Positions 8,587-64,000 of a DNA stretch of 64,000 nt are shown here, in pieces. Where the stretch lies: assembly GCF_052425735.1 (NCBI RefSeq), contig NC_135761.1:39246001-39310000 (forward strand), written 5' to 3'. The notes under the pieces are model-generated. The model searched no databases and had not been told where the DNA came from. It was given only the letters and a program-made list of their open reading frames with translations. Made by a program: the position numbers and the translations under genes. The stretch comes from Oculina patagonica (Eukaryota). Positions within the stretch are counted from its first letter, which is position 1; each line of letters begins with the position of its first letter.

Positions 8587-9309
8587 AATAAGATAAAATT
8601 TAGTTTAATTTTTCTTTGAGTTAGCACAGCTGACAAACTGAGCAAGCTTATAAATTCAACTAAATTGAAAACAGTACCAAGTTGGTTTTGTCTTAAACAT
8701 GACCTTTTTGCACAATTTCAGTAATTCATTCCAGTAATCCATGCTTCATGGATAATAGTTTGTATTTTTTATAGTTTAATTTATACTATTTTATCTCACC
8801 TGCAAAGTGCTTTAGAATAATTTTATATAATTTTAGCGCTACATAAATTAGATTATTACTATTATTAATCTGTAAGATTATGCTCTTCAGTGTCCTCAGC
8901 AACAAACAGCAAGCCCTAAAGGTTCAAAAAAAAGAACAAAACTTGGCTCAGCTGAAAAACTCAGCAAGCTAATAAGTTTAAACCAAAATCATTATTAAAA
9001 GTGTCATAAGTTGGTGAGAATTTTGTTGTGTTCCATCATCGTACAAGAGTCTGTCAGTACTACTGTATCACGGCAGCAACGCTGATTATGTGGCTGGTAC
9101 TGCTGTCTTTCCCAGGAATCAACATGTTTGGTTGATTTACTTCTCACCATGATTCTGATCAAGAAAGGAGTGTAAGCAAAAGTGATAAAGCAGTGATGAA
9201 GGAGTGAATGGAAAGGAAGAGGAAGTGGCAATTGGTGAAGAAATGGGAGGTAACAGAGGGGAGGAAGGTGAAGAATTGACATTTCCCGAGAAATTTCCAG
9301 TTGTTGGGT

Positions 9310-9675
9310 TCCGTTGGTGGCGCAGACACCAATAGTATACAGGACATCTACCATGGACTTGATTACAAGAATTTCGTACATCCTGGAGGTTTCCTATCTC
9401 ACCCTTACAACATCTCTTTTACTTTTAACACTGATGGGGTCAACAAATATTCATCGTCAATGCCTGGACAAAGCTTCCAAAGGAACACAGGTATAAAAAG
9501 AAATTTATTATTCCCACATATATCTATTATGACAAACATGATCCGAATATGCTTACATTTCTAAACCCTCTGGTTGAAAAGCTCAACACTATCTATGATT
9601 CGGGAATTGAAGTACCAGGCAGCCCTGCAAACGATAACATGCTTTTCGTGGCCACAGCGGATTTGCATGCCCGAG
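9310..9675 (+). pseudogene. EnSpm/CACTA transposase fragment
   Basis: DIYHG...GGFLSHPYNISFTFNTDGV, then after a frameshift LPKEHRYKK...PNMLTFLNPLVEKL...VATADLHAR. These are the TDG and DxxAR catalytic motifs of CACTA transposases. Confidence 0.85.
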
Positions 9676-10544
9676 GACAAGGAGGATTTTTAAAACTCTT
9701 ATAATTGTGACAAAAGTTTGTCATAAGTGGATACTTAACTTTTATAATAGTCACTCAGATAGAAAAATATTTATCTGTCTTGATTTATTTGAGAAGCAAT
9801 TTAGAGCTTTTGTTTTTAACTATTAATTTTAGAGACATTTTAATTTTATTCTCGTTTATTTTCTTACTCTTGTAAAGCAAAATAATGTAATATGTTATTG
9901 TAAATATTACATTACAGCACCCCAGATTCCATGAAACAGTAAAAAAAAACTGAAAGAAATATCAAGATAATTATTACTTACCATATAATTATGTGAGTAT
10001 TTTACCAGCATAATAGAAGTACTTATATATGTTAGCATAATATGTCTGTTAGCATCTTTCAAGTCCAAAAAATGCCAACAACAAGCATCATATACTGTAT
10101 TTGTTTGGCAACAAGTAAAATTTACTTGAAATTATATGACTTAATGTTTTTTCCTTAACACCACAAAGTACACTGACTTTTGATGACTTGATAAGTATAA
10201 ATCCCCTAATATAAAGTATAATTAAGGTGTAGTTATTGTTTTATTAATTCTAACCAATCTTCGTATTCTTTTTTTCTCGACAGTAATGGCCCAAAATCTG
10301 TCACATTGACACATTAGCAGGATACATCCATAATGTAATACCATGACAAGTATTTCGAGTTCCAGATCCAAGCAAAGACGGAAACAGTCTGAGCAGTCTG
10401 TTTCTCCCCCAGAAAAAGGAAACAATTTGCTGCCTATGACTACAAAAAGAGTCCTGCTTAAATAAAGAAGTTTAAAATTGACACTACATCAAATGCCTAA
10501 GATGTCCTCGTTGGAGATGATGTATCTGTTGATGATAAGACACT

Positions 10545-11040
10545 TTGTCTTCGTCTAAAACAAGGATAAAAAGAGGAGTTACATCTACCAGCAGAGACCA
10601 AATGGAAATTGCGCTCGAATTCCCGACTCATCTGAAAGAAACTGATAAAAGCCACCCTCCAGCTGCTCTTCGAATTCTTGATGAGGGTCATCTGACATTC
10701 GTGAAGAAAGAATTTCTCAACTTTGTGAAAGAAGCTGATTTGAACATTTGTGAAAATGTGAATGTGCGCAGCTTGAAAAAACACAAAACTATTTTCTTGG
10801 AAGTTTTCCATTTCAATGTTTATAATGACGAGGAGTTGCTGAAACTCTTTAAATGTCAGCAGAAAAGTGTGGAGCGCCAGTGAAGGATACAAGCAACAAT
10901 ATTATTGACAAGGGTCTATATTGCTTCATATACTGTGCAACACTGAACCAAAGAATTCTTCAGGGGGAAATTCGAAAGGGACTTGGCTACATCTAGTAAA
11001 GTTGTAGAAGCTGATAGGTCGTTGAGAGATCAAAAACATT
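10545..11040 (+). pseudogene. Degraded coding fragment, probably TE-associated
   Basis: 112-aa ORF with natural composition (LRILDEGHLTFVKKEFLNFVKEAD), continuing after breaks as KEFFRGKFERDL...EADRSLRD. Family not identified. Confidence 0.4.
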
Positions 11041-11097
11041 AGGTGTTGCCAAAAAAAGGTAGATTATTGTATTCAGTTCTAATCTGGGACCACAACG

Positions 11098-12075: not shown

Positions 12076-12313
12076 TCGAAAATGCACTCAAATAATCGAC
12101 CCAGCTCTACGCCGTCTTTGGACGGGGCATCTAACACCGAGGCTTCTCCAAGATCGAAGATGATGAGTCTCACTTTACCTGTCCACATCCAGTAATAGCA
12201 CGTTTTGTTTCGTGAATGGATGCCGTATGGGTCTGGGGAAGGAGAAAAAGACTGATGGAAACTCAATTCTCTTCTGTTTTCATCAATAAAGACCTTTCGG
12301 CGGAGATGTTACT

Positions 12314-12793
12314 ATGGAATTCTTTATGAGTGATGATACAGATCCATATTACAATGCCTGGTGTTCGGCTTTTTCAAGATCTGACAAAAAGCTGCTTTAC
12401 AGCTGGCACATGGACAGTAGCTGGCACCAAAAGCTAAATGAATTTATTAAAGACAAAGAACAGCAAGCAGAAGTGTATGAAGCCCTAAAAAATCTTCAAA
12501 ATGAGACCATCAAAAGTATATTTCGAAGATCCTTGCAACAGTTCCTTGCATGGTTAAAGGGCATCTCCCCAGAAATTACCTCTTACTTCGACAAGGAGTA
12601 CGCCTCCCAGAAGGGCATCCTCTGTGAAGGATTGCCCACAAACACCAACATGTTTCTGGAAAGCTTCCACCAAACCAAGCAAAACAGGCGAGTAGATCAT
12701 CTGCTGTGGACACGGGGCTACGAACAGTTGATCAAAGCTGAAAAGGGCAAGGTTAGCCAACGGCAGTGGGATACTAACAAGAGGCACAAGTAG
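12314..12793 (+). pseudogene. Mutator (MULE) transposase fragment
   Basis: FMSDDxxxYYNAW, LLYSWH (CxxH-like), TNTNMFLESFH and KQNRRVDHLL motifs; internally deleted. Confidence 0.85.
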
Positions 12794-13921
12794 GTGAATC
12801 AATACCATTGAAAGCCAAATGGGCCTCCCAAGCACATTAATCAGCTACACGCTGGTCGAGCAATACATCTGCCCAAAAGGAGGAACACTTTTGGACACTG
12901 GCCCGGTAAAAGAAATACGATTTAGAAGGAGTCTTTCCGCCGATGTGGTCAAGCAAAGCTTGATCGAGGCCTTTCCAACCCTGGAGAACTTGGACTTGTC
13001 ATGTTAAGTGCTCACTTTGAATTGTGAATCCACTAACCATAACTGTTACACACCAGCTCTACATCGTTCAAAGTATGGATAATTATCGACCCAGTAAATC
13101 TCTTTCTAGTGAACACTATTCAACAGTTCTCTGAATAGCAATATATGCGTCCCTAACCAGAATATTTTTGCTTCTTTACTTTCAAAAGGGTGAGAGTCAT
13201 TTCATAGCATTAGAAAGGAACAACCATGACAGTTGTGCACGTTGGGGTGCCTATTGGCGACAAGATTATGGAGCTCTTTGGTGGAATGTCAAAAAAATCA
13301 CTGAATCTATAGTGAAGGTAATCACGAGGGAAGTTTCTCCCAGAAACATCAAGAAAACCCCTTGTCTGAACTTGCAAAAATAAGGCTCAATCCACACTGT
13401 TACAAAGGCTTGATAAAATACTCCATTCATTGAATGTTTCAATCTGGTGATTGAAGGTGTGCTGAGAAATGGGGCAAATGAGCACTCACCACTGACATGA
13501 AATTGTTTAAGAATAGAAAAACAATCCAGAACATTTTTGGGATCAGACAAAAGGTAAATGCTAAAAGCAGTTTCAAACTGCGAGAAGGGAACCTCTTCAC
13601 TGGTTGGAAAACATAAGTCACAGACATGTACTCTTTTCAAAATCAGTGTTAGCTAACGGAGCCACAAGCCACACCTGTATGGGCACAGGACACAATTTAT
13701 ACTCTTATTTGCAGTGTAGACTACAGGTGGCACCTGAACGCTCCCTGACTAATTAATTTGTGTTGACATGTTCCCCGTTACCAGAGTCAGAAGGAGCCTT
13801 GGCGTCTCCAATTTTTTAGAAAGAAGCAAGGAGGTGGAGGATGAACTATAAACAAGGTCTCTTGCCTCTTGATATTATAAAAAGACCAAAAATTAATAGC
13901 TATCCTGATGGTGTTGCATTA

Positions 13922-14263: not shown

Positions 14264-14523
14264 GGCTTTGGGTACGGTGTGGCTATCGTTTATTGCTGTT
14301 AAGGACATTGGAACGCTTATAGTCAACCATTACGGTGAGCAAAAAGAAAGGCTTTGGGTACGGTGTGGCTAGCGTTTATTGCTGTTAAGGAAATTGGAAC
14401 GCTTATAGTCAACCATTACGGTGAGCAAAAAGAAAGGCTTTGGGTACGGTGTGGCTAGCGTTTATTGCTGTTAAGGAAATTGGAACACTTATAGTCAACC
14501 ATTATGGTGAGCAAAGAGAAAGG
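14264..14523 (+). repeat. 86-bp tandem repeat x3
   Basis: Units start at 14264, 14350 and 14436 (GGCTTTGGGTACGGTGTGGCTA...GAGCAAAAAGAAA). Preceded by ATG and followed by GTAAGT. Confidence 0.95.
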
Positions 14524-17209: not shown

Positions 17210-20200
17210 TACAGACCCGACGTAGAAAAAGAAGAAGAATTGGATTTGATGACCCAGGTGCCGTTGCAAAGGCCAAAATAAAGTCTAGCTCGTGTAGTTC
17301 CAAGACTAACTGGGAAAACATTTTTAAATGGACTTTAATTGTTTGTTGGTGTTTTTTCTTTTCTCAGAGCAATTTGAAATTTATTAGAGACTATAACGAG
17401 ACTTATTTCAGAGAGTTGATACAAACTTTGGAACAAAGAGCCTCTAACTCGTTCCCAGCAATACCGAGAAAAGGGGGATACCCCTCCCCTCTCTCACGTG
17501 TTTCTTTTTTTTGAAAATAGCTTTACAAGCGTGCGTTTTCTCAGAATCGCCGACCTAGAAAAAGCAATGTAGACTCATCTGCGCATGCGTTTAGTTCCAG
17601 GAAGAACAATACCATAAGGAACGCAAAGCGCTTTCTAAAAAAATACCTTTGTGGTCTTGCACACTGTATTAATTAATTGCGAATCCTTTCTAGTCATAGA
17701 ACTCAAAACAAACGTCTTTCATGTCTGATTTTTTATCTATATGTAATAGATACAACCATTGTAGCAATGTAAACTTTACTGGGATTGGTTCAAAGCATAA
17801 AAGCTCTCATTCATGGCTTGTACTTTAGCACGCAATGTCTAAGTAGTTTATAGTACAAGCTCACCTATTGGCAATGTTTTTTACAGACACTGTCTTGCCC
17901 TAAAAGCAGCTACCATGGCACGCCCTCGTCAACAAAAGGCGAAGAAGTCAGCAAGACCTCACCAGTTCCCACTCACAGTTAGTACGAAAGTTGAGGACAA
18001 CCTTGGCCAGCCAAGCTGCAACAACCGCCAACAACACTGGCCGGACCGCTGAAGGACGTGTAGCAAGACCACGCTCAGGTTGCCAGCGAGTTCAAAACAC
18101 TCAGCGTTTTAAGCTGCCACTATTTTCAATCAACAAGCAAGGAGAAAAAGTGGTTGACGAACTTTTTAAATAGTTGATTCAAACTTACCCAGAACTATCA
18201 GTTGGCGTGTTGCCTGATATCGTTTTAGCTGAAGTGGTGTTGCCCAAGAATCGAACAACAAAAAATATTGAAGATATAAGAGAGAAGCTGAAGAAAAGCA
18301 TTAAAAATCCAGGATTCAAGGATTACACTAACATGCATTTAAGATTGGATAATGAGGAAACATGTCTTGAGACATAAAGAAAACTTGAATTAGCAGAGAA
18401 GATGAAAGAAAAATAATCATGAACAACTGAAAGTAACCCCTCCTGCAGGCCTGCTTACAAGTTTCCCATTCCTAACAGGAACTCCCCGACAACAAGAACC
18501 AGGTGTGTTTAACATAGGCAAATATACCACGTGCAAGAGGATTGTAGACTTCCACGGAAAAAAGATGAGGATGCTGGTAAAGAGGAGATAACAGAAATGG
18601 TAAGGAGATCATTGCCCTTTGATTCATCAGCTGCTGCTACCCCAGAAGACCAGAGGAATGTAAAAGAAAGTGTGGCAGTGACCATTTGAGAAGGTCAAGG
18701 TCAAGGTGTCCCTGAACAAAAGATCAAACACATAGAGCTTTCTTTTGTCTGAATGTTTCATTGTTCTTATAAGAAGAAGATACTTGAAGTTAGAGAATGT
18801 AGGAAGCAATTCCTTTCAAATGTAGTTTACATGGTATTACATTTTCTCTGTTACAAACCCCAAACTTCAAGGTATCAGGCTTATTAACATTCTGTTCTTT
18901 TACTTAGATACATCTGATAATTAAAGAATGAGTTCTAAATCTTATGCTCATGCCATGTCCAGATCCAGAAGTGGAGAAGAAACCAACCGCATAGCACAAC
19001 TTGGAGCCCATTGAGTATTGCGATAAAAAAGACAAAGAGACTGTGAAACAAATAAAATCTGGCAAGTTTCATTTTAAAGATTTGCGAAACAAAAAGGTAC
19101 AAAGGCTAGATACCAACAGCACTAAGGAGTTTAAGACCCTGTGCAAGGAACTACTGTTCAACAACAGTAGCTGCTTATGAAGCAGGGAGTCATTTTCCAT
19201 GCATTTGTACCTCAAATATGTCTTTGCTTGATGCTTGTCAGGCGGATGTTGGGGACAGTATGTTGGCAGAAATGGAATTACAGTGCTTACAGAGTGGTTC
19301 TACAACAACCAACTACATTCGCACCAGCGAACGTCACCGACGGGAGGTGGATCGAGCCGAAAGACTCGGAAAAGAAATGTTTGATGCTGATCAGGCTGAT
19401 AGCAACAATGGCCTTTGTATTGATCCGAAGTCTTCCCATCATCCGAAAATGCAATGAAAAATGCAAAAGCCAAAACAGCCTATGGCAAACATGGCTAACA
19501 ATGCTGTTGTACTTTAAATGTGAATTTATCATTTTGAGCGAGCAAATTAATCAAAAGTGCGCACCCACTGTGATCATTGCATTGTATAAATCAAATCATT
19601 GTTTATGTAGGTTGAATGTTCTATCAGTTATTACCCTGTTATTATTGTGTACTATTTTGTTTCAGAGAAAGCAAACTTCCTGTCCTGGATACTGTACTGT
19701 TTACAATAGTTGTTGCAAACCAGAAGTCTGTGACAATAACTAATGTTTCCTTGGGGGTCAATATTTATGTAAGAATAGTGGGATTTGGTTCACAATGAAC
19801 ACACATTAAGAGTTTCTCAAAGCAGCAGTTGCAAATCCTGCAGACAGAAACAATGTTCTAAATACAAAGGAAGCTGCTACAGTTCCCATGTTAGGTGTCA
19901 GGTGCCAGCTGAAAGCAATATTTAATGAAAACAAGAATGCTACTGGAAGGGTTAAATATGTTGTTCTGACAACAAAGACAGAGGAAAAGGGGCATTCAAA
20001 ACATGGTCATTTTAATATGTATGTATGGGATACAGTGTTACTAACACCCGTGTTGAGCCTACTGCGAAAGGCTTTGACAAATGCCCAAAGCAACAGAAAA
20101 TTCAAGTGGAAAAAGATGTACAAAATTAATATTCTATCCTGCTGCATCTGGATAATGCAGTAGAAGAAGGTGGAGCTAAATGTGAGTTGGTGCAACAGCT

Positions 20201-20241
20201 AAATGTAGAGTAACAGTCACAGATCCACCATGCATCCAAGC

Positions 20242-20349
20242 TATTCTTTAACTAGTGACGATGTTGACATGAGAATTCTGCCTCGACAGATGACTAATTC
20301 AAACGTAAACAAAGATAACCACATGTTCCAGCTGTTGTCCTTCAAGAAT
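20242..20349 (+). pseudogene. DUF6589-like transposase-associated fragment (second copy at ~26872-26979)
   Basis: SLTSD(D/N)VDMRILPRQMT...NKDNHMFQ resembles the DNxD...PRxMT...HxF motif. Confidence 0.45.
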
Positions 20350-20870
20350 TTTCCATCAAACCAAGTCCTTATTTCTTCACCTAAGGATCAGGGTCCCAAA
20401 GAGTTTTAGGGCTGCAGGGCTCTCACAACAAAAGCGCAGGGCTCCTGCTGTATTGAGGACTCCAGGCTCCACTATGCATTTTTAAACTAATGCACAATTA
20501 AATCCTACAATTTGTTCGGGATCAAGTACCGAACAATTAACTTTGCCCCCACCAAGACCTCTCATCCCACAGGATTGTAATTTGGTATGTTTGATCTAGC
20601 CCCTCTATCAGACTTGAAATGCAACGTTCTTGTTACATTAACCCTAGGTCCTTGTGGAGGTCTTATTCGCCAATGCGATTTAAACAACAACATTAAAAGT
20701 TATGTTTATGACGCCTCCACGCAATTGTTGTGAGAGCAAGTTTTTGCTAACTTAAACGATGTTTGCATTATTTAAGTGCTTGCTTCATCTTACATAACAG
20801 ATTTTGGGTGCTTTCCTGCCGTTGAATAGTTCAGGTCATACGAAATATCAATTCACTTTTTACTTTTCAG

Positions 20871-20960
20871 AAGAGGAAAACCTACGCTGCTACAACTGCG
20901 GTGAGCTAGGCCACAAATTCTTTGAGTGTAAGGAAAAAAAGAGAAGAAACTGCCAGAAAA
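20871..20960 (+). pseudogene. CCHC zinc-knuckle exon-like fragment (second copy at ~27501-27590)
   Basis: RCYNCGELGHKFFEC (CX2CX4HX4C) directly after the acceptor TTTTACTTTTCAG. Confidence 0.7.
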
Positions 20961-21599
20961 AAACTAGGATAATGATGATAGGTCATGTGAACTTAATCCT
21001 GGGGGTGGTCAGGACAGAAGAGTGAGAGTTATAGCTAAGGCTTTTCAACCCTTTCCACGTCTAGCAAAACTTGGTTTGACCACAACAGAAGTGTGTAACA
21101 AACTTACAAGTATTTCTCAAAGATCTTGAGATTCCTGAATATAAAGACTTTTTGTCACAGACCAATTAAAAACAATTTGAAACTGTAGCCACAAACTGTG
21201 ATGAACGAAGAAATACCTGTCAACGAATGGCAGAAAAAGATTAAGTTGGCAGAACCGATGTTTATTCTATAAAGTTCTAAAATTCTGGGTAAGACAGAAG
21301 TGTTTTCCGTTTATGTGTTTATAGTACATCCTGCACATCGATCGGAAAGGCTCAAGGAATCAAATTTAGCTTTATTGATTGTTGAACTTTCCTCATAATC
21401 CAGCATTTTTTTCACAATCAACTAGGCATTTTCCCACCAGGTTTTTTTTTCCTCAAAATCATGCTTGAAATTTGGGGGTGTGGGTTATCTACGAGTGCAG
21501 CTTATACACAAGTTTCTACGGTACATCCATAGCACCCAAGACTGTTTTTGTGATTGTCAAAAGAGGGGTAAGCTTTTTATATATAATATATTTCACGCA

Positions 21600-47389: not shown

Positions 47390-47400
47390 TATTTCATAAA

Positions 47401-50399: not shown

Positions 50400-50800
50400 G
50401 TTTTCCAAACGAACAATGGCTGTGGGCAAGCGTATTTTTCTGCAATATAACAGCGACAAACCGTTGAGTGGCGCCGGATCTCTTGAAGACCTGGATCAGT
50501 AACTTAGTTAAAAGAGAAAATATAGACGGGAAACTGATCCTGACGGCTAATGCGATCAAAAATAATAAGCGGATAAAAAGCTAAATTATGTTGAAATATT
50601 ATTATTTATTCTTTAATTTTAGTTTTTTCTTATTAGCAACGACCCTTTTACTTTTCTCACATTTTTTCAGCCTAGCCCCTGAGGAAGGTTTGTATTGCAA
50701 ACCGAAATAAAGGGAAAAGTTTATTTAATTTATATAAGTTTTTATCCACTTTATTATTTTTGACCGCTTTAGCCGTCAGGATCAGTTTGCCGTCTACATT
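50400..50800. mobile_element. Penelope pLTR remnant with inverted partial copy and mutated hammerhead (50675-50715)
   Basis: 50523-50583 is the reverse complement of 50735-50796. CCC-CTGAGGA-A-GGTTTG-TATTG-CAAACC-GAAA-TAAA-GGG core. Confidence 0.7.
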
Positions 50801-51349
50801 CCCCAAGGACGATGTTTGAGTCTTTCCCAAAGACTCCTCCCTAGTTCGAATGCAAGATGGCGCTCGCCAACTCAGAAACGACCACTCAAAAGCGACATAA
50901 CTTACACCTATGCAAGAACGCAATATGACACTTTGTTGTGCGGTATGAAAATATGGTCAAGAGACGTTGAAAACCGTCAGGAATTACGAGAAAGCGTCAC
51001 TGGATATTGCGTTCTTGCAGAAGTGTAAGATATTTAATATTTACCCAAAATTTCTTGATTAGAAGCGACATATCGGCTTCCGTACGTACTGAGGGGGCAA
51101 AACGGGAATTGAGATTTGGGCAAATTGTCGGCCCCTGGCAAAAACCTCTGACGGCAGATTATGTACTTCTGTCGACGGTCAAATTTGGTAAAACACGTGA
51201 CGGCTATATCCGTGTTGGATCCGCGGTGAATAACGAACAAATAAACAGTAGAACTGGGACTCACTGTGACTTGGAAAACTGGGAAAATAGGAAAGTGGGA
51301 AATGGAATTTTACCCCCTCCTCCCCCAAACGCGCGCTCTGTCACCATCT

Positions 51350-51880
51350 TGCCTGGTTACTCAGCGTCACATCAGTTTGCACTTCGGGATCAGCCCACAT
51401 TTTCGCAAGACATAGCGTGGCAGTTGTTCATTCTAGAAAGAGCTCCAAACTTCAGGTAAGCACATAAGTTTGTTTGTTACATAATTCTCTTCAAACTAGG
51501 AGAGTTACAGTAGAAACTGCACCCCTTTACGCGACTGTCTTGTATGCAAACCGCTTACCTCCTCGAGCTAGCGCGCACGAGGTTCGCACCCCGATCGAGT
51601 TTGCAACGTCGTAGTTCGAGTTCGATCAGACTAAAAAGTTTCACCAGGTTTAATCTAAAAGCACGAGTTCGTATGTTTTCATTTCTGAACTAGGAATGAT
51701 CCTTACTCACATTACTTCGATGCGGGTTTTGACTAAGTATGGTTTGAGTCTGACATTGCGAAATTTAACACATTACAAAACTCGAAAAAATCAGCCTGAT
51801 TTTCCACGTGAGATCTTACGATGGTATCACAAAAAGCTTAATATCACTTGTTTATCGCTCCAGTACACTTGCATGGTAAG
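51350..51880 (+). promoter_or_regulatory. Putative promoter / non-coding exon 1 / intron 1 start (right-facing), paralogous to 34510-35233
   Basis: Same 23-mer at 51350-51372, donor CAG|GTAAG at 51455/51456, CpG-rich, collinear homology downstream. Confidence 0.6.
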
Positions 51881-52894
51881 CAAAAACATCCAACAGTGTT
51901 GTATGTAAAATATTTTTTATTTTTTGTTGTTGTTAACTGATATTATTTACAATTTTGTACTGGTATCTTGTCATGATATTTTGCTAGGTATCTTTGCCTT
52001 CTTTCTCCATAAAATCTTCCTACATATGGTAACATCTTATTCATTGGCCATATAAATTTTCTTCTGAGTTATTTTAATATAGTTTTTGAGAGAATCAGTT
52101 TGCGTCGGTGTTAAGCGCGAATTGTTGGTGCACATTTCTAAACATGTTCAAGGCTTTGTTTGAAAAGTAAATTCAACCTCAACACAACTGACAAATTTGA
52201 AAAGTATTGTAAATGTTTGTGTAGAAAAAGTTATTGTATGCAATCCTCAACCGTTACATTTACTTCAATTGTTTGTTTTCATGTCGACAAAAACACTCAC
52301 TTTTGGGTCGGTTTATGCAAGTATAGCTGAGTGCGTCATGTTGAGTAAATTTGACTTCAACACAACAAATCTGTGTTTTTGTTTAAAACACCGATGATTA
52401 ATGCGGTTGTGTGCAGGACTAAAGACTTCGAAAAGCATTTCTGGTGTTCTCCAAATCAGGCGGTAACTGGTAAAATTTACCGCTTGTAACAAGACTTGTT
52501 ACTGCTTAGAAATCTTGAAAATTCTACAAGTAAATAACAAATTAATGCCACTCATTTCACCCTCATAGTCATGATCCAAAATATAAAATAACAGATTGAA
52601 AATAAACAGCGACAAATGCAATATTTATTTACGAATTTGTGTTTCTGAATCTCCAGGGCTGATACCTATCGATTAAAGAGCAAGTTTTGCTGGTCTTTCT
52701 CACTTCTTGGTAAGTGCATATCTGTTGCTCGGCAGTTTCCACGATGAAGCGGCAGCAATCCTTGCTGAAAACAATCACAAATGCAGAGGTAAAAATAATT
52801 TAAGAAGTAGTGAGAAATGTTACTTAAGTAAGTAGTTCATTTTTCTAAAACATGCAAAACGCAGAAAATAGGTGAATGCTTAGTTGAACGTAGT

Positions 52895-53170
52895 TGACGT
52901 GTGGTGAAGACAAATGCAGCTTTCCTTGTCAAATTCCGCTTCTGCTTCCCCCAAGCTCCATGTGGTGTTCCTCATCTTCGGTTTGCGAACCACTTTCCCG
53001 CATTCGCTTTTGTCGTTCTCCATGATCAGGGTCTGCGGAGGCGTCTTTGCTATCTTCTTTCCCCATAGTTTGTTAATCCATGATGATTTTTTAAGTTAAA
53101 AGTTTACATGAATATAACGAATTGATTGAGCTCTCAGACACGTCTTACCTCAACAAGGTGCACTGCGTAA
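52895..53170 (-). pseudogene. Probable LINE 5' UTR plus ORF1 N-terminus
   Basis: ATG at 53066: MGKEDSKDASADPDHGERQKRMRESGSQTEDEE..., similar in style to the ORF1 start at 23580. Confidence 0.4.
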
Positions 53171-53687
53171 GTCCCGAGAAAAAAAAAAGCGTGCAGGAGT
53201 CAGCCTATGTTTTTATGTTTGTCTTGGTATATAGAATATTGTGATTAATCTTAAATTGAAACATTATAAGCTTTGTATTCTTAGTTGTAGAAATTGGCCA
53301 TTTGTATGTTGTTTGTCCAATCCGTAGCTGATGATTCAATTTTCATTAGTTGGTGGTTGGAATTTATTTTTAACAAAATTTATATTTTGCAAAACAGCAT
53401 TGGAAACATTTTCATTAGTGTCTCTGATTTTGGATTGACGGAATTTTCCATTTGCTTTCGATTGCGCTAAGAAGACCGTAATATTTAGTAAAATTTGTCC
53501 TTAAGTTAAATTGATTAATGAATTGGTGATACCTTAGGAATTCTTCTCTGGTATCAACTAAGGGGTGTCAAACATTGTTAATACCTACCTTGTACCATGA
53601 CTTGTAAAAGCTGGCTTTGTTTGTTTGTTGCTTGTTTTTTTTGAATTGTCTATAGCTTGTGGTGCTATCCTTGAAGAAGTGAATACT

Positions 53688-54687
53688 CAGAGGGTTCAAT
53701 GGAATTTTGTACAGCCGTTGCTGTGGTAGTTACAGGGGTAACACCAATAAACACCGATATACATTAAAGACAAATTTAGTAAATGCTTTTTCCTTCATTC
53801 TGGAGGCATATTTTCTCATTTTCTGCAAACAACTTTGTGTGCATTTTGTTATCTGTTCAGTTGCTTTGAACACAGGAAGGTTGAAATTATCTCTTATCAA
53901 ACAGAAAATTACACTGCAATATTTAATGAAATATTAACCTGCAATAACAATGCTTTGCTTTCTGAGTTAATGGAATTTATTTTATACACAAATCATTATG
54001 AAGTAACCAGTCCTCTCTAATGGGAGCACCCATTTATAAAAACTAATTCTCAAGGTTTCACTGACCTAGTAATTGCTATTACCGGTATATCCAAATGAGA
54101 AAGAGTATAAGATAGAGCAAACATTTGTGAATGAATGAATCTGTACAACAAAATTGATCTATCGTATTATTTCAATTATAAGGCGCACGGTTTTTTCAAG
54201 GAAAATCTGTTTTTCTGTGGGAAGTTTTTGCCAAAATTGGGGTGCGTCTTATAGCCGAGTATTTTCGCCCAACAAATCTTATGACCGCCATTTTACCGGA
54301 ACATTAATAGAAATAAAACAAGAAAAATGAAAACGCTTAATTTTGGTCATTGACTTTTATAACAAGAAAACAGATATAAGAATTAGCAAGTTTCAATGTA
54401 AAGTTTATTGTCACGATTAAACAAGTTGCGAAGACGCGAAGCAATTGTTCAGGCATTCTGTGGTCTGCTGAAAGGCTATTCACTTCGACAACTAAAACCG
54501 AATAAAGATACATTGCAAAAGAAACAAACAGTCAATAGTTTACCCAGTAATTTACTCAAAAGGTCGTTCTTTTATTTGCATTTCAAAGATCAAATGATTG
54601 ACTGGTTGAAGTACTTTGACAGCCATAACACTTACTTGTGACACCCGTGACAGGTGCTACGGGTTACGGGGTCAACTGAGAATCCTG
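53688..54687 (-). mobile_element. Second copy of the CAGGG-terminal element of 31074-34012 (without its nested inserts; has its own insert at ~54163-54420)
   Basis: Reverse complement matches 31074-31335, 31472-31535, 32412-32776 and 33716-33996. ORF 54408..54641 mirrors 31119..31337. Confidence 0.9.
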
Positions 54688-54823
54688 ACTCTAGGCACAT
54701 ACTGAATTTTCCACCCACTGAAACCCAAATGGTTTCTTTAATTTCCAAAGATCTTATTCTGTCTAAGAGCTCAAGGAGTAGCTTGCCCTCGCGATGTTGT
54801 TGTTCATCACTCGTAAAGTCACT

Positions 54824-55345
54824 CGTCAGTTTGTGCCACAACATCTCAATGGGATTGACGTCTGGGCTTTCTGCTGGGATCTATCACCAGCTGATTTCGT
54901 TAAACTCCAAATAATTCTTTGCCAGATTTCTTTCGTGCTTTGGATCATTGTCTTGTTGGAATCTGTGACCTTCAAGAAATTTCTCCTGGATGAATGGAAC
55001 AGGAGTTTGTTCAAGAATTTCTTTGACATAGAATTTGGCATCCATGTTGCCAACAAACAGGAAGACCTTCATGGCACCATGCTTGGAAATCCTGGTCCAG
55101 ATGTGTACTTTGTATGGATGCTTGGGGCAACCCTTGAACTTTGCTTGCTCAAGCTTGCGGCTAAAAAAGATCCTGGCATGGTTCTTCATGTGTACTGAGC
55201 ATTCATCTGTCAATATAATGCTGTTGAATGTCTCTCTTTTTCCCTGACACTTGGAAGCAGAACTGCAACTGTTTCACCCTGTTTGGCTCTTTGATCAGCT
55301 GGCAGTACAGTATTTCGTTCCTGTCTGGACCCAGCCAGGCTTCTT
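54824..55345 (-). pseudogene. Tc1/IS630-family transposase fragment
   Basis: YCQLIKEPNRVK...ILTDECSV...PKHPYKVHIW...RFQQDNDPKH...PAESPDVNPIEMLWH (DDE triad). Confidence 0.92.
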
Positions 55346-55961
55346 CTTATGACAATTACTTGTGCTATGTCATCCTGATCCTAAAAAAATTAATGGACTT
55401 CAATTTTGCATTCCAAAAATCACATAACAGAGTGAAGCAAAAATTAACTTGAGATACTTAGAAACCTTATATAATAATGGCTGTTTTATAAACACATTTT
55501 GACACCATGTATATGTTTAACAGGCTCTTACCTTAATGAAATAAGTAAATTTGTCTTTTATCCCCATGCCCATTGGTGGAGTGTATAGCAAAGTCTGTGT
55601 TTTTTTCTTTGCAAAGAAAGGTTGCTTAAGTCTGAAAGCAGTGGACAAAGCATTATTTTTAAAGAAAACACTAATATATTGCTCAATAAGAGTGATATAC
55701 AGTATGATCGCATTAATATAAGACACCATGGCTCAGTATAAACTTAACCATAAAAATTTTCTGATTTACTTTTTAGTTTACTTATTTTAACTGAACCCAT
55801 TTATTGGGACCAACAGAAGAATATCAGCACACAGTCTTAATTTATTTTCTATATGTCTCAAGTCCTAGGGATATCATTCCCTCTTTACATTGTGGCACTA
55901 TAGGAATGTGCAAAGTATGACATTTCAAAGTCAGAAGCTCACTGTAATTGAAGTATTATTA

Positions 55962-56745
55962 CCTGTGGGTAAATAGCGAAGGCCAGAGTACCTTTCAAGT
56001 ACTTTCTTGACTGTTACCTGTCCTTGAAGCTTACTGACCCACTTCCTCCTGTAGTCAAAGGAGACCTTAAAGAATCCCGCCCACCCACTTTGCATTGCGC
56101 GCCCATTTATTATCCGGGACCGATATCCGTCCATATGGGCACAGACAAGACACCGATCGTGACAGCAGAGAAAATATGAGGATCAACACAAGAAAACAAG
56201 ATCCAGCAGGAACGTCAACAAATGGACAAATGAACAAACAAAACTAACAAAATTAATACTGTTGCCCAGACGATTGAAATTTTAGAGACTGGTTAAACAA
56301 GGGACTCACGCCTGTCGCACCGCCGAGGCTCCAGGTGGTGAAGCGCCTGCATACTAAGCCCTGATCCAAGGCCTCCTGAATCCAGAGGCGAACGTTGATG
56401 CCGAGAATTTTCTTGGTTGTTCCGCGGGAGCGGGACGAAATGCCATCCGAACAAACGAGAAAATGAAAGAAAGAAACCAATAAAATAGACCGAAAAACAG
56501 AAACAAAGAGGGGAGAGAGCGAACACAGGGGGGAGCGCGGGCCACGTCATAGATGTCATACAATGGGGTTTGCTTTTGAGGCGCGCAATGCAAAGTGGGT
56601 GGGCGGGATTCTTTAAGGAGGCTTATCAGCTTCTTCAGGTCTGGCTTTGCTTTAGTCATCTCCTTGATGACTTGGTCATCATTTCCATCTTGTGTTGACT
56701 CTGTTTTCCAAAGTAGCATCTGGCCTCTTTTCTTCTATGGATTTT
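55962..56745 (-). pseudogene. EnSpm-associated accessory ORF exon (SAMD3-like region), split by a Kolobok-like insertion
   Basis: Removing 56071-56616 restores KEMTKAKPDLKKLISLLKVSFDYRRKWV...VKKVLERYSGL, followed by a donor AG|GTAAT. Confidence 0.55.
56071..56612 (-). mobile_element. Kolobok-like non-autonomous element
   Basis: 33-bp perfect TIR AGAATCCCGCCCACCCACTTTGCATTGCGCGCC, TTAA TSD inside a CCTTAAGG target, AG...CT termini. Confidence 0.8.
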
Positions 56746-58304
56746 CCATGTTAGAGAGCACCAAAAAGACTATTTTTAAGTTAAAAAATTAATTTAAAAA
56801 GTCATGTAGCAAGAATAGAAAATCTGAAACACTGTTTTTTAGACCAATATATGTAAAAAAATCCACATAAAGGTTTAGGTGCTCATATAAACATGTTCTC
56901 AAATAAGCCTCATGTTATGCAACATCATAGTTTTAAACAAAATGCTGATGTTGCTTATTATGGTCTATAATCTCTAATGCAGTCACAGGTCAAATATAAC
57001 ACTACTGTCCTGTTTTGGAGCACTTGCTTATAAAAGCATTGGTCTATAAAGAAAGAAACACCCTTTTCACAGGGTTTTCACTGACTCAGTTTCAAATGTA
57101 TGGTTATTATTTTGAATGAAATTTCAAAAAAGAAATTGAAATGTCTCTTATTCTTGTGTCTTATAAAACTTGTAAAAGTCTGGTGAATTAATTCAGCTGT
57201 GGAAACACTTGACTTTTTGTTCTCTCAAAATTTTACAGTTATTACCATTACTAGATGGAAATGCAACAATCCCTAACACACAGTTCACATTACATTAGCA
57301 AACTATTGCACATCCCTTGGAGGGGTAAGGTCCATAATGCAACTTTACATGGATGGGACATGTCCGTTGTATGGTATGTCCGGTGGATTTGGCCATCTCT
57401 TTCTGACATTTTGTACAATGAGTTGGGCAGGACCTCCCTTACATGTACATCCTCTACATAAAGGCCTAGTTCATTCTTGCGCTGCAAATAAGTAGGGTTG
57501 GCCCATAACCTAACCCTCTTCAACATATGATAATACTCTCTTTAATCTTTATAACCCTTGGCAATCTATCGTGGACGTGGTGGTTCATATGCTTGTAAAA
57601 AGGCAGCCTTTGATTGTGATCTTAGCACACATGGCTGCTGTAAGCAAAACCTTCAGCAGCCCCCTCTTCTTGTCAGCTCACCCAGACTGTAATGTGGGAT
57701 ATTCCTCTCTTAGCTTCTTCAGGTCTGCCTTCGCTTTAGCCACCTTCTTGATGACTTGGTCATCGTTTTGCTGACTCTTCTTTTTCCTTCTCTAATGGCT
57801 CAAATGCAGCTTAAAGAAGCATGTGATATCCCTTGGTTGGGCTTTTTATCCATTTCTTATTTTCCCCGACTGTTGGGAAGATCAAAATCTTAACAGCGTT
57901 TTCTTACATAAATGTCAATGTCTGTGATAACCAAAGAAGATGATGGACGATAACAAATGAAGAAAATGGCGATATAAAATGCCAGTAGTTCAAATGTAGT
58001 CTATCTAGCTCTCTCTGGTTCAATGGAAAGCTATCACTTAAGAAGTGAAGGAAACGCAAATTCCCTTTCTTTTTATTTGCCAAGATGACCAATGACAAAG
58101 ATCTGCACTTCATGCTTTCATGCACTGTCCTACATGTATGCAACTGTAAAAGAAGTAAACAAAATTGCACAGTACAAAAATTTGTACAGCATGAGTGGTT
58201 TGTATACCGTGTCATCCATGGCATTTTGCTCAAATTTTCCCATGAATTAGTTTGCATATGAAGGTGTCATGCAGGTCACCATGGCTGTTTCGTGTATTTG
58301 TAAA

Positions 58305-58662
58305 TAATCTTATTGCATAGTGATCTTGAGACCGTACCAGCTGTGCCAACTGTGTGACTGGCCATATAATCAGCAGCAAAATCTTGTGTTTGCCGAAAGT
58401 GATATGAAATATACTTACCAGAGTCAATGACTGCCAACATGCTTTTTTGCACCTTAGATCTCGGGATCTTCATGGCAGTTTCCTGTCCATTTTTGAAAAT
58501 TGATCTGAAGTCAGCCGTCGCTTCCAGCCCTAACTTGACGCAAATCTTGCGCATGTTCTCCAGACTATAGGGGGTCCCTGCGTCTGCCAGAAATTTCGCT
58601 TCCTGTCTTCTTTGCAATGTGTACAGTCCCATTACCGGGAGGTTTTCCACGCTGTGTAACAT
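58305..58662 (-). pseudogene. Possible tyrosine-recombinase C-terminal fragment
   Basis: KICVKLGLEATADFRS ... AADYMASHTVGTA and, in the adjacent frame, QDHYAIR. Resembles the R...MxH...TAxxHY end of YR domains. Confidence 0.45.
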
Positions 58663-59674
58663 TATTTTGGTCTAAGCCACTGGGCTACCTGAAAACCAAA
58701 CATTACACCAGAGAAACAAGTGTTTATTAACAAATTTATTTTTAATTGTGAAAACACAATGGCAGGCACATTTTCTAGCGATTTAATATCTAGAAAACTG
58801 GATTTGACATTACCTATCCATATCATACACATATCCCTTATAAAAGTGCATGTGACTTCTGTTATTAATGTACAAGAATATACTCTTGTATTAATATTCA
58901 CAACATAGCAACGTTATGTTCCAAAGCAACATGTTATGACTCTGAAAACCTGTGATTTTTTTACAGGCCGGGTGTAAAGTTAAGATATGAAAGTAATAAA
59001 AGCTGTTATACACACAATCACTGAGCCATTGGTTTGAAGAAATGTTATCTTTTACCCCATTTTTGTTTTTGCCATTTTCCACTGCATTAATGATATCTTT
59101 TACAAAGTTGTCCAGGGTGGCAATAACTTTGTATGTGTTGCCATACTGCTGTGTTACATATGGGATTAGTTTATCATGGAGATACTCGTCAACATCAGCT
59201 TGACTGATAACACTGTCATCTGCAACTTGATTAATTATCTGAGGAGTGGATAATGAAAAAGTTAAGCATGTAAATTTTGTAAGTACTAGATATTTTTCAT
59301 TAATTAGCTATAGATAGGTGTCGATTGAGTATTTATAGAACCGACACTTGATTGCTTCTGTAACAGATAAAGAGTTGAATTTCAGACTAAGGTAATTATG
59401 AATGTCATTGTGCACATAGATTTTTTCCATGATTAATATGAATAATAAATCTCAATTCAAGCTCAACTTCAGCTTGAAAATTGCCCATTGGGGCTCATCA
59501 CTGATCACCTAAAAATAGGGTTTAGAGACAAAAAACTGTGGTTGCCAAAAAATGCAGATTAAAATGTAGCATCATGCTCCTAAAATCTTGTGGCAGACAA
59601 GAGCAAGACATGTACAGGCACCATAAAATAAAAAATTTAAAATAGAGAAAAAGGAGAATAGTTGCTGAGTTACG

Positions 59675-60050
59675 GTGGATCTTCACCTCTTTACAAGGTT
59701 TGCCCCTTGCAAAGCTGTACCAAACCCAGAGTTCATCAGGATGGTAAACCATTGTGATCTTGCCAGTTGCTGGATATTCCTCTTCTCCCCAGCCAAAGTT
59801 CAGCCAGTGGACATCCTGGATCTCTTTCACATAGTTTCCGTCTCTGTCCTGCCAACAAACGGCTTTGTTTGGCTGGTTTCCTCTACCACCTTCATCTAGT
59901 GTTCCTTTTTTCAATTTGCGAGAAATCGATGTCATTTTCCAAAAAGGTGTGCCCGATCAAGAATCTGTGGTTTGACACTTTGTAAATTCCAGGCTGGTGC
60001 AGCTTGGCAAATACAGCAACAACTGTCCTATTTTTATTTTTTATTTTGGA
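59675..60050 (-). pseudogene. Sola-like DDE transposase fragment
   Basis: (Q)NKNRT...[23 protein letters not shown], then VHWLNFGWGE...HPDELW. Confidence 0.65.
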
Positions 60051-61956
60051 AGGTTTCAACTCTTTTTTGCTTAGGGCTAGGCTTGCAATCCACGTATAAA
60101 TCTTCACCAAGGCCTCGCTGTAAACCATGGCACACGGTTTCTGAGTTTGGCAAAAAAGTATTCTTTGATGATTGCCTTCTTGTTTCTTGCTCTCTCAATG
60201 GAAGTATGAAATGTGGATTTCAACTGGTTGAGCTCCAGAACAGACATTTGGTCTTTTGGGACCGCACTCAATCATAAATGTTGACCAAACTAGACCTTTA
60301 ATGCTGCCAAAGAACCTCTCACGTTTACGAGATTGATTGCCACGGAACCATGTTGCTTACCCAGTTCAGTTGCTAGTTGAAGCGCTGTTTTGGCAGGCGA
60401 TGCTGTTTAAAAACGCCTGATGTTATTTACAACATGGGCAACATAGTCCCCACTCTTGTGTTCCTCACTCTCGCTGGCAGTGTCTGTGTCACTTTCAGCT
60501 GAAGGTTCCTAAGGACGCCCTGGACCTGAATGCACCTTCGCCACTAGAACAAATGTAGCTCACAGAAGCATGTGGTTTCCATTGATAGGGCTTTTTATTC
60601 GTTTCGTTTCTTTTTGCCGACTGTTGGGAAGATCTAAATCTTAATAGCATTTTGTTATATGGCAAATGCAAGTCGGTGGATTTCAGTAGTGTCTTCCTTG
60701 ATGTCAATGATAGCCAATGAAGATGATGGATGAGAACAAATGACTCTGATAACAGGGAGATCAAATTCGTCATTTTTAAAACTGTTCCCTCTCTATCCCA
60801 TGCCATAATATTAGGATGTCACCTGGCAAACTCGAGGTTTTTGTGGTTTTTTGTATAAAGATTTGGCAAAAAAGTGTGTAATCCATGTATAAAGAAAGGT
60901 CCAAGAATCAAAACATGTACAGGGCCCATGAAACTAAAATGTAAAAAAAGAGAAAAAGTTGAATACTTGCCTGAAAACGAGAGAATCTTGAATGGCGTAC
61001 GATTCTTGGTCGTGGACCACCACACAAAAATCTCGAGCAGTTCTTTGACTTAAAAAACAATCTAAGGCAAGGTATTCTATATTGTTTACAACATCTTAAC
61101 AACATCTGTGTACCAAAGATTGCTTCTACACAGTCAACTTCTTTCAGTGTGCTCTAGCTGGCTAACCCTTCTAACCTTCAATGAGCTTGGCCCTAACCCT
61201 TCGGCTAGAGATGTTGCACATCACTTATAAGTTCTGACATTTGGAAGGTTTATGTGCTACAAGCTAGCACTTGTTTATGCCTTATTTGGTCAGTGTGGTT
61301 ACTAGTTATTATTGTTAGCAATTTTCAGTAGCCACAGACATCAAGTGCATTATGGTTTGGCTGGTTAAGCCTCTACCTGTAAGTACTTCACCTGTACTTA
61401 CTTTGTGTTTGTCTTGTTTACTCTTTTTCTTTTTCTCTCTTTCAGCCAGTCCAGATCTTTTTCTTTTTTAAGAGACGTTTCTTCTCCTTTTTGCTTTTTC
61501 TGTCTTTGTTTGTCCTTTGTGGCGTTATTCTCACCATCTGACACAAAGTACATGTAAGTAGTTAAAAAATGATTAAGCTTTTTCAAAAGATAATTATTAT
61601 TACATGTGAGCAAAAATTCTGCATGATCGATAATACTCTTATTAAAATATAGAAAGGCAAGATAGTAATCACTGTCTTACCCATAAAAGATCCTTGAACT
61701 CCGCCTACTACTACTAACATTTCGAAACAACCAAACCACTTTTCACGCTTATATAGCCGAACCAGCGCTCCATTTGACCAGCGGTGTGAAATTGAGTGAC
61801 TTTTGGTGACTGTAGAGCGACTGTAGAGCACGGTAGAGCGGTTTCGCAGCACTTTCTTAGCCAATCAGAAGTTTAATCAAAACCAATCATGCTTACGGTA
61901 TGCAAGTTCTATTCCCGTCCTTCGTGCCAGGGACCTGTATAATTACTTTGGTTTTT

Positions 61957-62702
61957 GTTACCTTTCCTGTAGAGAAGAGAAGCATAGCAAAATTACATTG
62001 GCTGCACACATCCAGGTCTAAGCCCTCAATCTCTTCCTCAATGTTTTTGAAGAGAAGGCTTTCTTTCATCATAATGAATGCGTGATGGAGTTGAACCAAA
62101 ACGCCAACACTTTTAGGAGCAGATTTTAAGAGTTCTTCAAATTTCCTTTGCTCCTCCATCCACTGGCTGATGGTTTGCTTCCCTTCCCTCTTTTAGAAGG
62201 TAATAAAATTACAAAAAGTTTAAAAATACACCACAAAAATACCTTTGTGCAGATAGAGTCAGAGTGTTTTTTAAATGATGGTCTGAGGCCTTTTGTAAAA
62301 AGCATTTTGTATATCAAACATTCAAATATACTTTGACACTTTCACAAAGATCTTAAAATTGAGATGAATGTCAGTTGGTTCACTTTCATGTTGACTTGGA
62401 AATCATATTGGCTCTGCTGCAATCAGTTACCAGTGATTGATTATATATTTGGTTTGTATTGTTACCTTTCCTGTAGAGAAGAGAAGCATAGCAAAATTTG
62501 ATTGGCTGCGCACATCAATGTCAAAGCTCTCAATTTCTTCCTCAATGTTTTTGAGGAGAGGGCTCTCTGTCATCTTAGGGAATGCCTGATGGAAATAGCC
62601 AAATTCTAACCCTTTTAGGAGCAGATTTTAAAAGATCCTTAAATTTCTTTGGGCCCTCCATTCACTGGCTGATGGTCTGATTCCCTTCCCTCTTTTAGAA
62701 GG
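61957..62702 (-). repeat. Diverged ~245-bp direct duplication of an exon-like unit (61957-62200, 62461-62702)
   Basis: GTTACCTTTCCTGTAGAGAAGAGAAGCATAGCAAAATT ... CCCTTCCCTCTTTTAGAAGG occurs twice. Both copies end in a minus-strand donor AAG|GTAAC. Confidence 0.85.
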
Positions 62703-63169
62703 GAATAGGAAGCATCCTTGTTGATGCCCTAGTAGAGAGAAAAGCAATTCACGCCTCTGTATTACACCTCACTCCCTCTTGAGTTATTTAGTTTTATCAT
62801 GGAAGGAGATAAAAGTCGGTTGCTAGCAAACCCCTAAGAAATGTGTTGGGCAGGAATTTCACTGCTACTTCACCCTCTATTTTCCTTTTCACATATGGTA
62901 GCAGGCTAGGCCACATTGGTGGGAAGCAAGCTCTTCCACCACTGCATCAATGTCCAGGAAGTAGCTGACGCCTTCCAAGTCCTGAGTATCTAGCAGGTCC
63001 ACCAGTGCTGAATCATCACTGACCTGACCCCTGTCAGATGCAATGGTGTTTTGGGAGAAAAATGGCATTAAACATAATGTTTCCCTTGTTTGGTGAAACA
63101 TCCACATCTATCAATAAAAGAGAATAAGAGAAAATTTAGCTAAAGATAGCATGTCCATAGTCAACTTGT

Positions 63170-63736
63170 TTATTATCTTGCACTGGTTTGTCATAATAAG
63201 TCTGAAAAGTTCCCGCATTGGACCACCCAGCAATGGAGATAATTTATGTTTCACAATGTGAACTAACAATTTGGCTACCATGGCAACACACTTGGTTCCA
63301 GTTCCGAAAGGCTTTTCTGGCTACATCAAGCATTCTTTTGTGTTATTTGTCAATTTTGTTTTATATGCATGCTCTGACAAACATGTGAATGGATTAGGCA
63401 GTCTTGTCCAGGTTTCATATTTCTGAACTGAAAAATACTAAAATATTTTGGTGGGGACTGGAAAAGAGTGAGTTGCTATGGTAACATAATTTAATTAAAA
63501 CTATTAGTATGCCAAGTTTCATTGGTCTCTGCAGAAAAATGACCGAGATAACTCAATTTTTGTACCTGACATAGAATTGGGTTGATTTGCACATTTTACG
63601 ATTTTCTAAGCTTTAATATCTCTGGAACTGAAAAAGATATTTGAAAGCGGAAAACGTCATTTTGAATCTTTCGTTAAATACTCTATAAAACGCTAATAAA
63701 GCAAGGGGTGAAAATTTGATCATAGCAGCACTTTAA
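63170..63736. mobile_element. Interspersed DNA-transposon-like repeat ending ...GATCATAGCAGCACTTTAA (Kolobok/Crypton-type MITE)
   Basis: CTTTAA terminus and internal CCATGGCAAC / GTTGCTATGGTAAC motifs. Left boundary uncertain. Confidence 0.45.
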
Positions 63737-64000
63737 ATTATCAATTATAATGATACCAGTAAGGATGATGATATTTCATATGTCGATGATGATCACTATG
63801 AGAACAATGATATCTCACCTTTTTATTCCAAAAAGTAGACATCGAAGCCCCCCCCATGTGGGAGGACCAACTTGTCTCAAGTCGATTAGTGTGTTGTCAC
63901 GGACCCATCTTCTGTGCTTCAGAATCCGCAGCTCTTGCATTGAGCATACGAGCCTTTCTGGAGTATTGTTCTAAAAGAAAATAACAATGATCAGTTTGTG

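Follow-up and report, generated by a model that had tools for sequence, protein, structure and literature searches.

We analysed a window of 64,000 nucleotides from the genome of the coral Oculina patagonica (assembly GCF_052425735.1, contig NC_135761.1, positions 39,246,001 to 39,310,000 of the forward strand; coordinates below are those of the window, and + denotes the forward strand) and found that it is organized as two CpG-depleted arms rich in transposon remnants, separated by a spacer and accompanied at their inner edges by a pair of paralogous sequence modules that face outward. Arm 1 (7500-34500) is A>T-skewed and has its coding remnants on the + strand; arm 2 (52000-64000, where the window ends) is T>A-skewed and has its recognisable coding remnants on the - strand; and the spacer (35234-51349) has an observed-to-expected CpG ratio (CpG o/e) of approximately 1.05, no net AT skew, short repeats and one remnant of a long interspersed nuclear element (LINE). 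The modules coincide in place with the inner borders of the CpG domains and with the reversal of sign of both remnant orientation and skew, and it is this coincidence that argues for a pair of divergent transcription units starting at the modules, with arm 1 transcribed on the - strand and arm 2 on the + strand. We regard this reading, which is drawn from sequence features, as evenly poised between right and wrong.

If the reading is correct, two units of the RNA polymerase II type would each start from one of the paralogous modules, in which a 23-bp element precedes a short non-coding first exon that ends at a consensus splice donor. The left unit would run on the - strand from 35.2 kb down to approximately 7.5 kb and the right unit on the + strand from 51.35 kb to past 64 kb, each proceeding outward through a methylated body rich in transposon remnants, with an unmethylated spacer of 16 kb between them. 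Insertions carrying signals of their own on the transcribed strand would be purged by selection, leaving survivors that are antisense to the unit; such purging would operate alike in introns, in long non-coding RNAs and in uni-strand clusters of PIWI-interacting RNAs (piRNAs). The product of the left unit is more probably non-coding than coding.

Paired modules and compositional domains

Module 1 occupies 34990-35233 on the - strand and module 2 occupies 51350-51602 on the + strand, both facing away from the spacer and into the arms. Each begins with the same 23-mer, TGCCTGGTTACTCAGCGTCACAT (35211-35233 in module 1 and 51350-51372 in module 2), which is present in exactly two copies in the 64 kb, in inverted orientation and 16.1 kb apart, where none is expected (no match in shuffles of the window). 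The 300 nt upstream of the two 23-mers are unrelated (z=-0.15 versus shuffles); the 300 nt downstream contain about 190 alignable nt at approximately 60% identity (z=10 versus shuffles), with homology extending to about 34990 in module 1 and about 51602 in module 2. An identical donor-like site, CAGGTAAG, is located 67 and 83 nt past the 23-mer in the two modules, and the putative first exons would reach 35144 and 51455, respectively, each followed by a GTAAG donor. The short open reading frames (ORFs) over the modules are not conserved past the motif, and therefore these putative first exons would be non-coding. A first-pass annotation of this DNA had described a homologous promoter, exon and donor module pointing outward at the inner edge of each arm; the 23-mer and the homology of about 190 nt bear this out, on a smaller scale than its wording suggests.

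The 23 consecutive identities within an alignment of about 60% identity argue that the motif is not the product of neutral decay of one duplication. It would be either a constrained cis-element or the conserved terminus of related repeat subfamilies. At the module ends, we found no target-site duplication, no end of the long terminal repeat (LTR) type and no TG...CA pairing, and an origin of the module from a solo LTR or a target-site-duplicating insertion is without support. The possibility of a single 16-kb element with the 23-mers as its inverted ends was rejected, given that the additional homology extends outward and not inward. The 23-mer was absent from the JGI metagenome contigs, from IMG/VR and from the papers that were searched.

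The composition of the arms sets them apart from the rest of the window. In 30 bins of 1 kb within the arms (9-24, 31.3-35 and 52-64 kb) the CpG o/e is 0.57 and the TG+CA o/e is 1.21, versus 1.05 and 1.02 in 23 bins outside them (1-8 and 36-51 kb), and both differences are significant by the Mann-Whitney test (p=1.9e-7 for CpG and p=1.9e-5 for TG+CA). Values for arm 1 range from 0.15 to 0.9, compared with about 1.05 outside. The left edge of its CpG-depleted domain is sharp, at approximately 7.5 kb, and the inner edges of the two domains, at approximately 34.5 kb and 52-53.5 kb, lie 0.7-2 kb outward of the modules. The loss of CpG together with a gain of TG and CA is the footprint of germline cytosine methylation, and the domains read as a mosaic footprint of this kind, with methylation as the presumed cause. 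Three control loci indicate that the O. patagonica genome is a mosaic of CpG-depleted and non-depleted DNA. Cnidarian methylation is highest in introns and the transposons within them, with promoters and intergenic DNA relatively depleted (PMC8857917), and the CpG domains fit a scheme of unmethylated start and methylated transcribed body, without proving transcription.

AT skew provides an independent, mechanical measure that agrees with the polarity of the remnants. In 1-kb bins, it is +0.068 in arm 1 (p=9e-4) and -0.045 in arm 2 (p=0.03), and it does not differ significantly from zero in the spacer (+0.008) or in the left flank (-0.012).

Assembly redundancy and the polarity of the remnants

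Special attention has to be given to a run of 500 N at 24692-25191, within arm 1. The sequences on its two sides, 18570-24689 (copy 1, adjoining the left edge of the gap) and 25192-31340 (copy 2, adjoining the right edge), are direct copies of one another, with 97.97% identity, 60 mismatches and 13 gap openings in their alignment; copy 2 opens on the first base past the N run and copy 1 stops 2 nt short of it. The flanks of the gap are thus redundant and not continuous with each other. These 6.1-kb copies are almost certainly the unmerged, overlapping ends of contigs joined by the scaffolder, rather than a biological tandem duplication, and they probably represent haplotype variants in GCA_052425735.1. 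The case resembles the unmerged contig-end overlaps of scaffolded assemblies, with 98% identical copies whose inner ends lie at both edges of a fixed gap of 500 N, and we found no difference from them; the gap region is best read as an artefact. As a consequence of this redundancy, the whole of 25192-31340 repeats what is already counted in 18570-24689, the true length of arm 1 falls short of its apparent length by about 6.6 kb, and, since the duplicate makes up one quarter of the arm, counts of independent fragments taken from the raw sequence are inflated. ORFs listed across the N gap are artefacts. The pairs of LINE ORF1 and Penelope fragments reported in the first-pass annotation were double counts of this origin.

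To assess polarity, all stop-to-stop ORFs of at least 60 amino acids were compared with Pfam per strand and per region, leaving out copy 2 (25192-31340), and matches with E<0.01 were tabulated. On the + strand of arm 1, 49 ORFs yielded zf-CCHC (5.4e-5), DUF5764 (1e-4, not localised), GIY-YIG (0.003) and Transposase_21 (0.007); the 41 ORFs of its - strand yielded only SK_channel, EF-hand_10 and DUF6515 at 0.003-0.007, which are noise. In arm 2, the 33 ORFs of the + strand had no Pfam match, and the 32 of the - strand had DDE_3 (0.0012) and DUF7869 (0.0039). The spacer gave no Pfam match on the + strand (32 ORFs) and RVT_1 (7.5e-28) on the - strand (33 ORFs), and the 47 ORFs of both strands of the left flank (1-9 kb) gave one noise match. 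ORFs of 46-59 amino acids in the arms (66 and 69, both strand sets) matched nothing in Pfam above noise.

Transposon-family matches are antisense to the proposed direction of transcription in six of six cases in arm 1 and two of two in arm 2, and the ORF scans against Pfam detected no transposon homology on the opposite strand of either arm. The weight of the polarity is that transposon families were seen on the predicted strands only. For the six tool-supported, non-duplicate remnants of arm 1, all on the + strand, a two-sided binomial test gives p=0.03; arm 2 contributes only its two. The earlier claim that every recognisable transposon fragment lies on the + strand between 9 and 34 kb and on the - strand between 52 and 64 kb therefore holds for each fragment that can be detected, with about 6 and 2 supported instead of the 12 and 6 that had been listed. 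No mixture of orientations was detected within either arm, among remnants that are few and in several cases weak. It is important to note that non-transposon hits with E of 0.0015-0.007 occur in almost every ORF set, and therefore GIY-YIG, Transposase_21, DUF7869 and DDE_3 are not significant individually. The LINE ORF1, Polinton pPolB, DUF6589-like, DIRS-like, hAT-like, Harbinger, YR and Sola-like fragments named in the first-pass annotation were not confirmed, as searches of Pfam and the PDB with the candidate ORFs gave no named match. A PDB sequence search with the pPolB-like, YR-like, GIY-YIG, "LINE ORF1"-like and 34.6-kb ORFs returned no meaningful match, an exact-sequence look-up of 11 ORFs of the window in a protein collection returned none, and Rfam and tRNA scans of the whole window were likewise empty.

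The individual remnants of arm 1, all on the + strand, differ in quality. An EnSpm/CACTA-type transposase remnant (Transposase_21) at 9435-9701 is weak (E=0.0072, 16 bits, under the family cut-off), as is a GIY-YIG endonuclease-like ORF of the Penelope type at 32874-33329 (E=0.003, 18.3 bits, under the family cut-off, with no PDB match). A MULE transposase remnant truncated at both ends (12209-12796) has homologues with PF10551 at 51-68% identity, and its ORF 12290-12790 retrieved homologues carrying this MULE domain with E down to 6e-45. A zinc-knuckle (CCHC) ORF at 20798-21022 exceeds the family cut-off (zf-CCHC, 5.4e-5) and has its twin at 27428-27661. A repeated protein family without a Pfam domain occupies 22801-23793, with a twin at 29441-30444 that has been annotated as the gene ACROYT_G015183. 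In the protein search, ORF 22844-23386 of this family is 96% identical to the hypothetical protein ACROYT_G015183 of O. patagonica, and other cnidarian-type assemblies contain members of 183-282 amino acids, down to 42% identity.

The longest opposite-strand ORF of arm 1 (23071-23739, - strand, 223 amino acids; twin at 29723-30466) overlaps this family and exemplifies how opposite-strand ORFs can mimic genes: its database matches are only five proteins of 67-118 amino acids over the same DNA, and these short look-alikes are probably antisense gene calls. Mismatches between 22.8-23.4 kb and a homologous contig concentrate at third codon positions (64 versus 40 and 38, p=0.012), a count that cannot separate the strands, the + and - frames having common third positions here. 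The + strand was assigned on the basis of homologue lengths and annotation. A further side observation in arm 1 is a young tandem array at 14264-14523, with three copies of an 86-bp unit and 97% matches.

One repeat family is found in both arms, as an interrupted copy of colinear pieces with 78-96% identity at 31074-34018 (+) and as a compact copy at 53682-54687 (-), inverted relative to the first; this inverted placement also fits the opposite polarity of the arms. Arm 2 contains, in addition, a Tc1/mariner-type DDE transposase remnant at 54635-55273 on the - strand (DDE_3, 0.0012), which has at least one break and lacks the N-terminal part; it matches the catalytic domain of the Sleeping Beauty SB100X transposase with E=0.001 and a weak colinear continuation. 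Further out, 57801-60743 is a unit between direct repeats (57801-57960 and 60550-60743, with about 82-86% identity and 2.75 kb apart) containing a run of - strand ORFs between 57.9 and 60.2 kb, one of which (59895-60194) matches DUF7869 weakly. The unit probably represents one composite insertion, not three, so that three items counted separately in the first-pass annotation fall within one repeat unit. Another direct repeat, 61947-62205 and 62448-62707 (84% identity), contains two - strand ORFs with a common peptide motif.

The spacer DNA is unrelated to either arm and contains repeats of its own and a LINE remnant. The latter is a jockey-like reverse transcriptase at 47710-49185 on the - strand (RVT_1, 7.5e-28), upstream of module 2. 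It has 492 codons and no internal stop, is 5'-truncated, lacks the endonuclease part and is the strongest transposon ORF of the window, with 63% identity to an Exaiptasia "mobile element jockey" reverse transcriptase and 89% to a protein of an ENA assembly. A tblastn search of 120 LINE proteins against the window found this to be the only LINE piece. It lies in non-CpG-depleted DNA and is not annotated as a gene; either the element is young or the surrounding DNA is unmethylated.

The spacer also contains an inverted repeat pair with 76.8% identity (39919-41045 and 42059-43154), between whose arms there is a 330-bp tandem duplication (41309-41979, 84.7%). Related pieces occur at 39.3-39.7 and 45.0-45.3 kb and at another O. 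patagonica locus, and therefore these repeats belong to a dispersed short repeat family. A young tandem array with two copies of a 160-bp unit and 97% matches is located at 49973-50299. In the left flank, which is not CpG-depleted, a pair of 1.1-kb inverted repeats (97-1195 and 5094-6191, 92.8% identity) encloses about 3.9 kb and may derive from the termini of a DNA transposon or from a foldback element; the enclosed DNA had no match to a Pfam family.

Weighing the explanations

The position of the LINE reverse transcriptase, in the spacer and upstream of module 2, does not agree with the layout described in the first-pass annotation. Several observations weigh against divergent transcription units. 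Independent remnants are few, and the boundaries of the arms were set after inspection of the data; with the change-point picked post hoc, the polarity pattern has a p of approximately 0.02-0.15, and it is not significant when only the robust matches (MULE, the 22844-23386 family ORF, zf-CCHC, Tc1 and the LINE reverse transcriptase) are kept. Four of the eight Pfam matches have E of 0.001-0.007, no better than the non-transposon noise hits. The donor match CAGGTAAG is a run of 8 nt that could arise by chance at the identity of the alignment. AT skew remains positive up to about 41 kb, past module 1, and its cumulative peak is at approximately 41 kb and not at 35.2 kb, in part because of the inverted repeat pair at 39.9-43.2 kb. 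The hexamer AATAAA occurs 31 times on the - strand, that of the proposed transcript, versus 13 times on the + strand in 9001-35143, an excess due partly to the 86-bp tandem array, which supplies several of these hexamers on the - strand. This excess is also the reverse of the prediction from the A>T composition of the + strand. In arm 2, the corresponding counts are 11 on the proposed strand and 17 on the other. The asymmetry of TG versus CA runs in the predicted direction in raw counts and is gone after correction for base composition. Finally, the intergenic retrotransposons of Acropora are methylated about as much as the intronic ones (PMC8857917), and therefore CpG loss does not require transcription.

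The main alternative is that the region is not transcribed at all, the arms being old, methylated transposon graveyards whose polarity results from chance and non-independence, and the modules being relics of related repeat subfamilies with the 23-mer as a common terminus. We consider this alternative quite possible, while giving it less than an even chance. Independent remnants number only about 6 and about 2 once the assembly duplicate is collapsed and the 57.8-60.7 kb unit is merged, long-ORF counts show no bias between strands, and Acropora transposons are methylated outside genes (PMC8857917); moreover, the homology of the modules, with its sharp onset at a conserved end and its fading from there inward, has the look of transposon termini. 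Against it stands the coincidence in place of the modules with the borders of the CpG domains and with the reversal of sign in orientation and skew, and the spacer, which has repeats of 77-85% identity too, is nevertheless not CpG-depleted. The modules, as described above, lack a target-site duplication or an LTR-type end, and no further copy of the motif or module was found in 75 kb of other O. patagonica DNA, a sample too small to carry much weight. Another possibility is that the arms are long first introns lying behind the untranslated first exons of two head-to-head paralogous protein-coding genes, with the ordinary antisense bias of intronic transposons. In its favour, the two modules are paralogues that have kept the donor, an antisense bias of transposons within introns is well established (PMC3517506, PMC3088655, PMC1794541), no cnidarian compartment is more methylated than introns with the transposons in them (PMC8857917), and arm 2 continues past the window, so that coding exons could lie further out. 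Against this, the public annotation viewed for 19565-40447 (CM126638.1 39265565-39286447, GCA_052425735.1), of a kind that may omit untranslated exons, contains only ACROYT_G015183 (29565-30447, +), a transposon-like hypothetical protein annotated in redundancy copy 2 only, and no gene on the - strand across 19.5-40.4 kb. Because the listings for the control loci show genes that overrun the ends of a locus, we conclude that no annotated gene spans 19.5-40.4 kb or module 1. The CpG-depleted domain of arm 1 ends at about 7.5 kb without a recognisable coding exon on the - strand, the ORF scans of both arms gave nothing beyond Pfam noise on the strands proposed as sense, and a tblastx comparison of the two arms found no paralogous exons, only the one repeat family that they have in common. 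We hold the first-intron explanation to be improbable.

The proposal of the first-pass annotation, in which the arms are uni-strand loci for piRNA precursors under the control of a duplicated dedicated promoter with the 23-bp element, and their transcripts are processed into antisense piRNAs, is a special case of divergent transcription units, and every point in favour of the latter applies to it as well. In addition, the arms show no host genes in the annotation of 19565-40447 or in the ORF scans and contain remnants of many unrelated transposon superfamilies, as clusters do; the clusters of Nematostella are mostly uni-strand (402 of 457; PMC5731801), a review describes cnidarian piRNAs as derived from uni-strand loci (PMC9923473), clusters have been predicted in corals (PMC13343488), and uni-strand clusters of the flamenco type recur in insects (PMC10643416, PMC7161354). 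The prior is nevertheless low, as the clusters of a coral genome number from tens to about a hundred and occupy well under 1% of it, and an antisense bias of transposons inside transcribed units is a known general effect (PMC3517506, PMC1794541), so that a piRNA cluster is not distinguished by polarity alone. The LINE reverse transcriptase, which is the best-preserved element and probably the youngest, is located outside both units, the clusters reported in corals are not transposon-dense (PMC13343488), and the "dedicated promoter" is based on two copies of a motif. Our literature search found no paper on O. patagonica small RNAs. We therefore consider piRNA precursor loci unlikely here, although a more plausible explanation than first introns, and still more doubtful is the narrower proposal that TGCCTGGTTACTCAGCGTCACAT, together with a short spliced leader exon, is the mark of dedicated promoters for uni-strand piRNA precursors, two paralogous copies of which would drive divergent transposon traps.

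Relation to known systems

The closest resemblance is to the flamenco and flamenco-like clusters of Drosophila (PMC4120762, PMC10643416) and Aedes (PMC7161354), with which the region has in common a putative discrete start with a spliced first exon and a long body of unrelated transposon remnants, antisense to the proposed transcript and without host genes in the annotation and ORF scans examined. The differences are that the arms are approximately 20 kb and at least 12 kb long, compared with at least 180 kb; that their remnants are mostly DNA transposons and assorted retroelements and not endogenous retroviruses; and that the host is a coral, in which the arms are known from sequence alone. 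The uni-stranded clusters of anthozoans (Nematostella, PMC5731801; reef corals, PMC13343488) belong to the same animal class, where the one-stranded type is expected; these were defined by small-RNA reads, with neither promoters nor transposon orientation described, whereas here only the architecture is available. In three reef corals, 47-107 piRNA clusters per species have been predicted (PMC13343488). The earlier statement that no such architecture had been described in corals was consequently too strong (PMC5731801, PMC13343488, PMC9923473), and the region is possibly, at best, a new case of a published type, the uni-strand cnidarian cluster, in which the promoter element may be new.

A parallel with divergent mammalian pachytene clusters had also been drawn. 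Mammalian bidirectional pachytene piRNA clusters have one common promoter of a few hundred bases. The window likewise has two units that would diverge from a central region, but their starts are 16.1 kb apart, with paralogous modules of their own and a spacer between them instead of a common promoter, and therefore the region is unlike clusters of the pachytene type. With the antisense bias of intronic transposons (PMC3517506, PMC3088655, PMC1794541), finally, the outcome and the proposed cause are the same, and the difference is that the region has no enclosing annotated gene and that the strands proposed as sense yielded no coding exons.

The more certain lesson of this analysis is a practical one, namely that an assembly duplicate inflated the fragment counts of arm 1. 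As ordinary non-coding or intronic transcripts, the units would still make the region a clean example, in a mosaic-methylated invertebrate genome, of an alignment between the direction of transcription, the orientation of transposons, the skew in base composition and the loss of CpG. If the arms are transcribed and yield piRNAs, they would constitute a cnidarian piRNA cluster tied to a defined promoter element and a methylation domain, the design of an antisense trap behind a discrete promoter would be shown to predate the bilaterians, and the motif could be used to find further clusters from sequence alone. Should the promoter reading of the 23-mer hold, it would be the first sequence-defined piRNA-cluster promoter element outside bilaterians.

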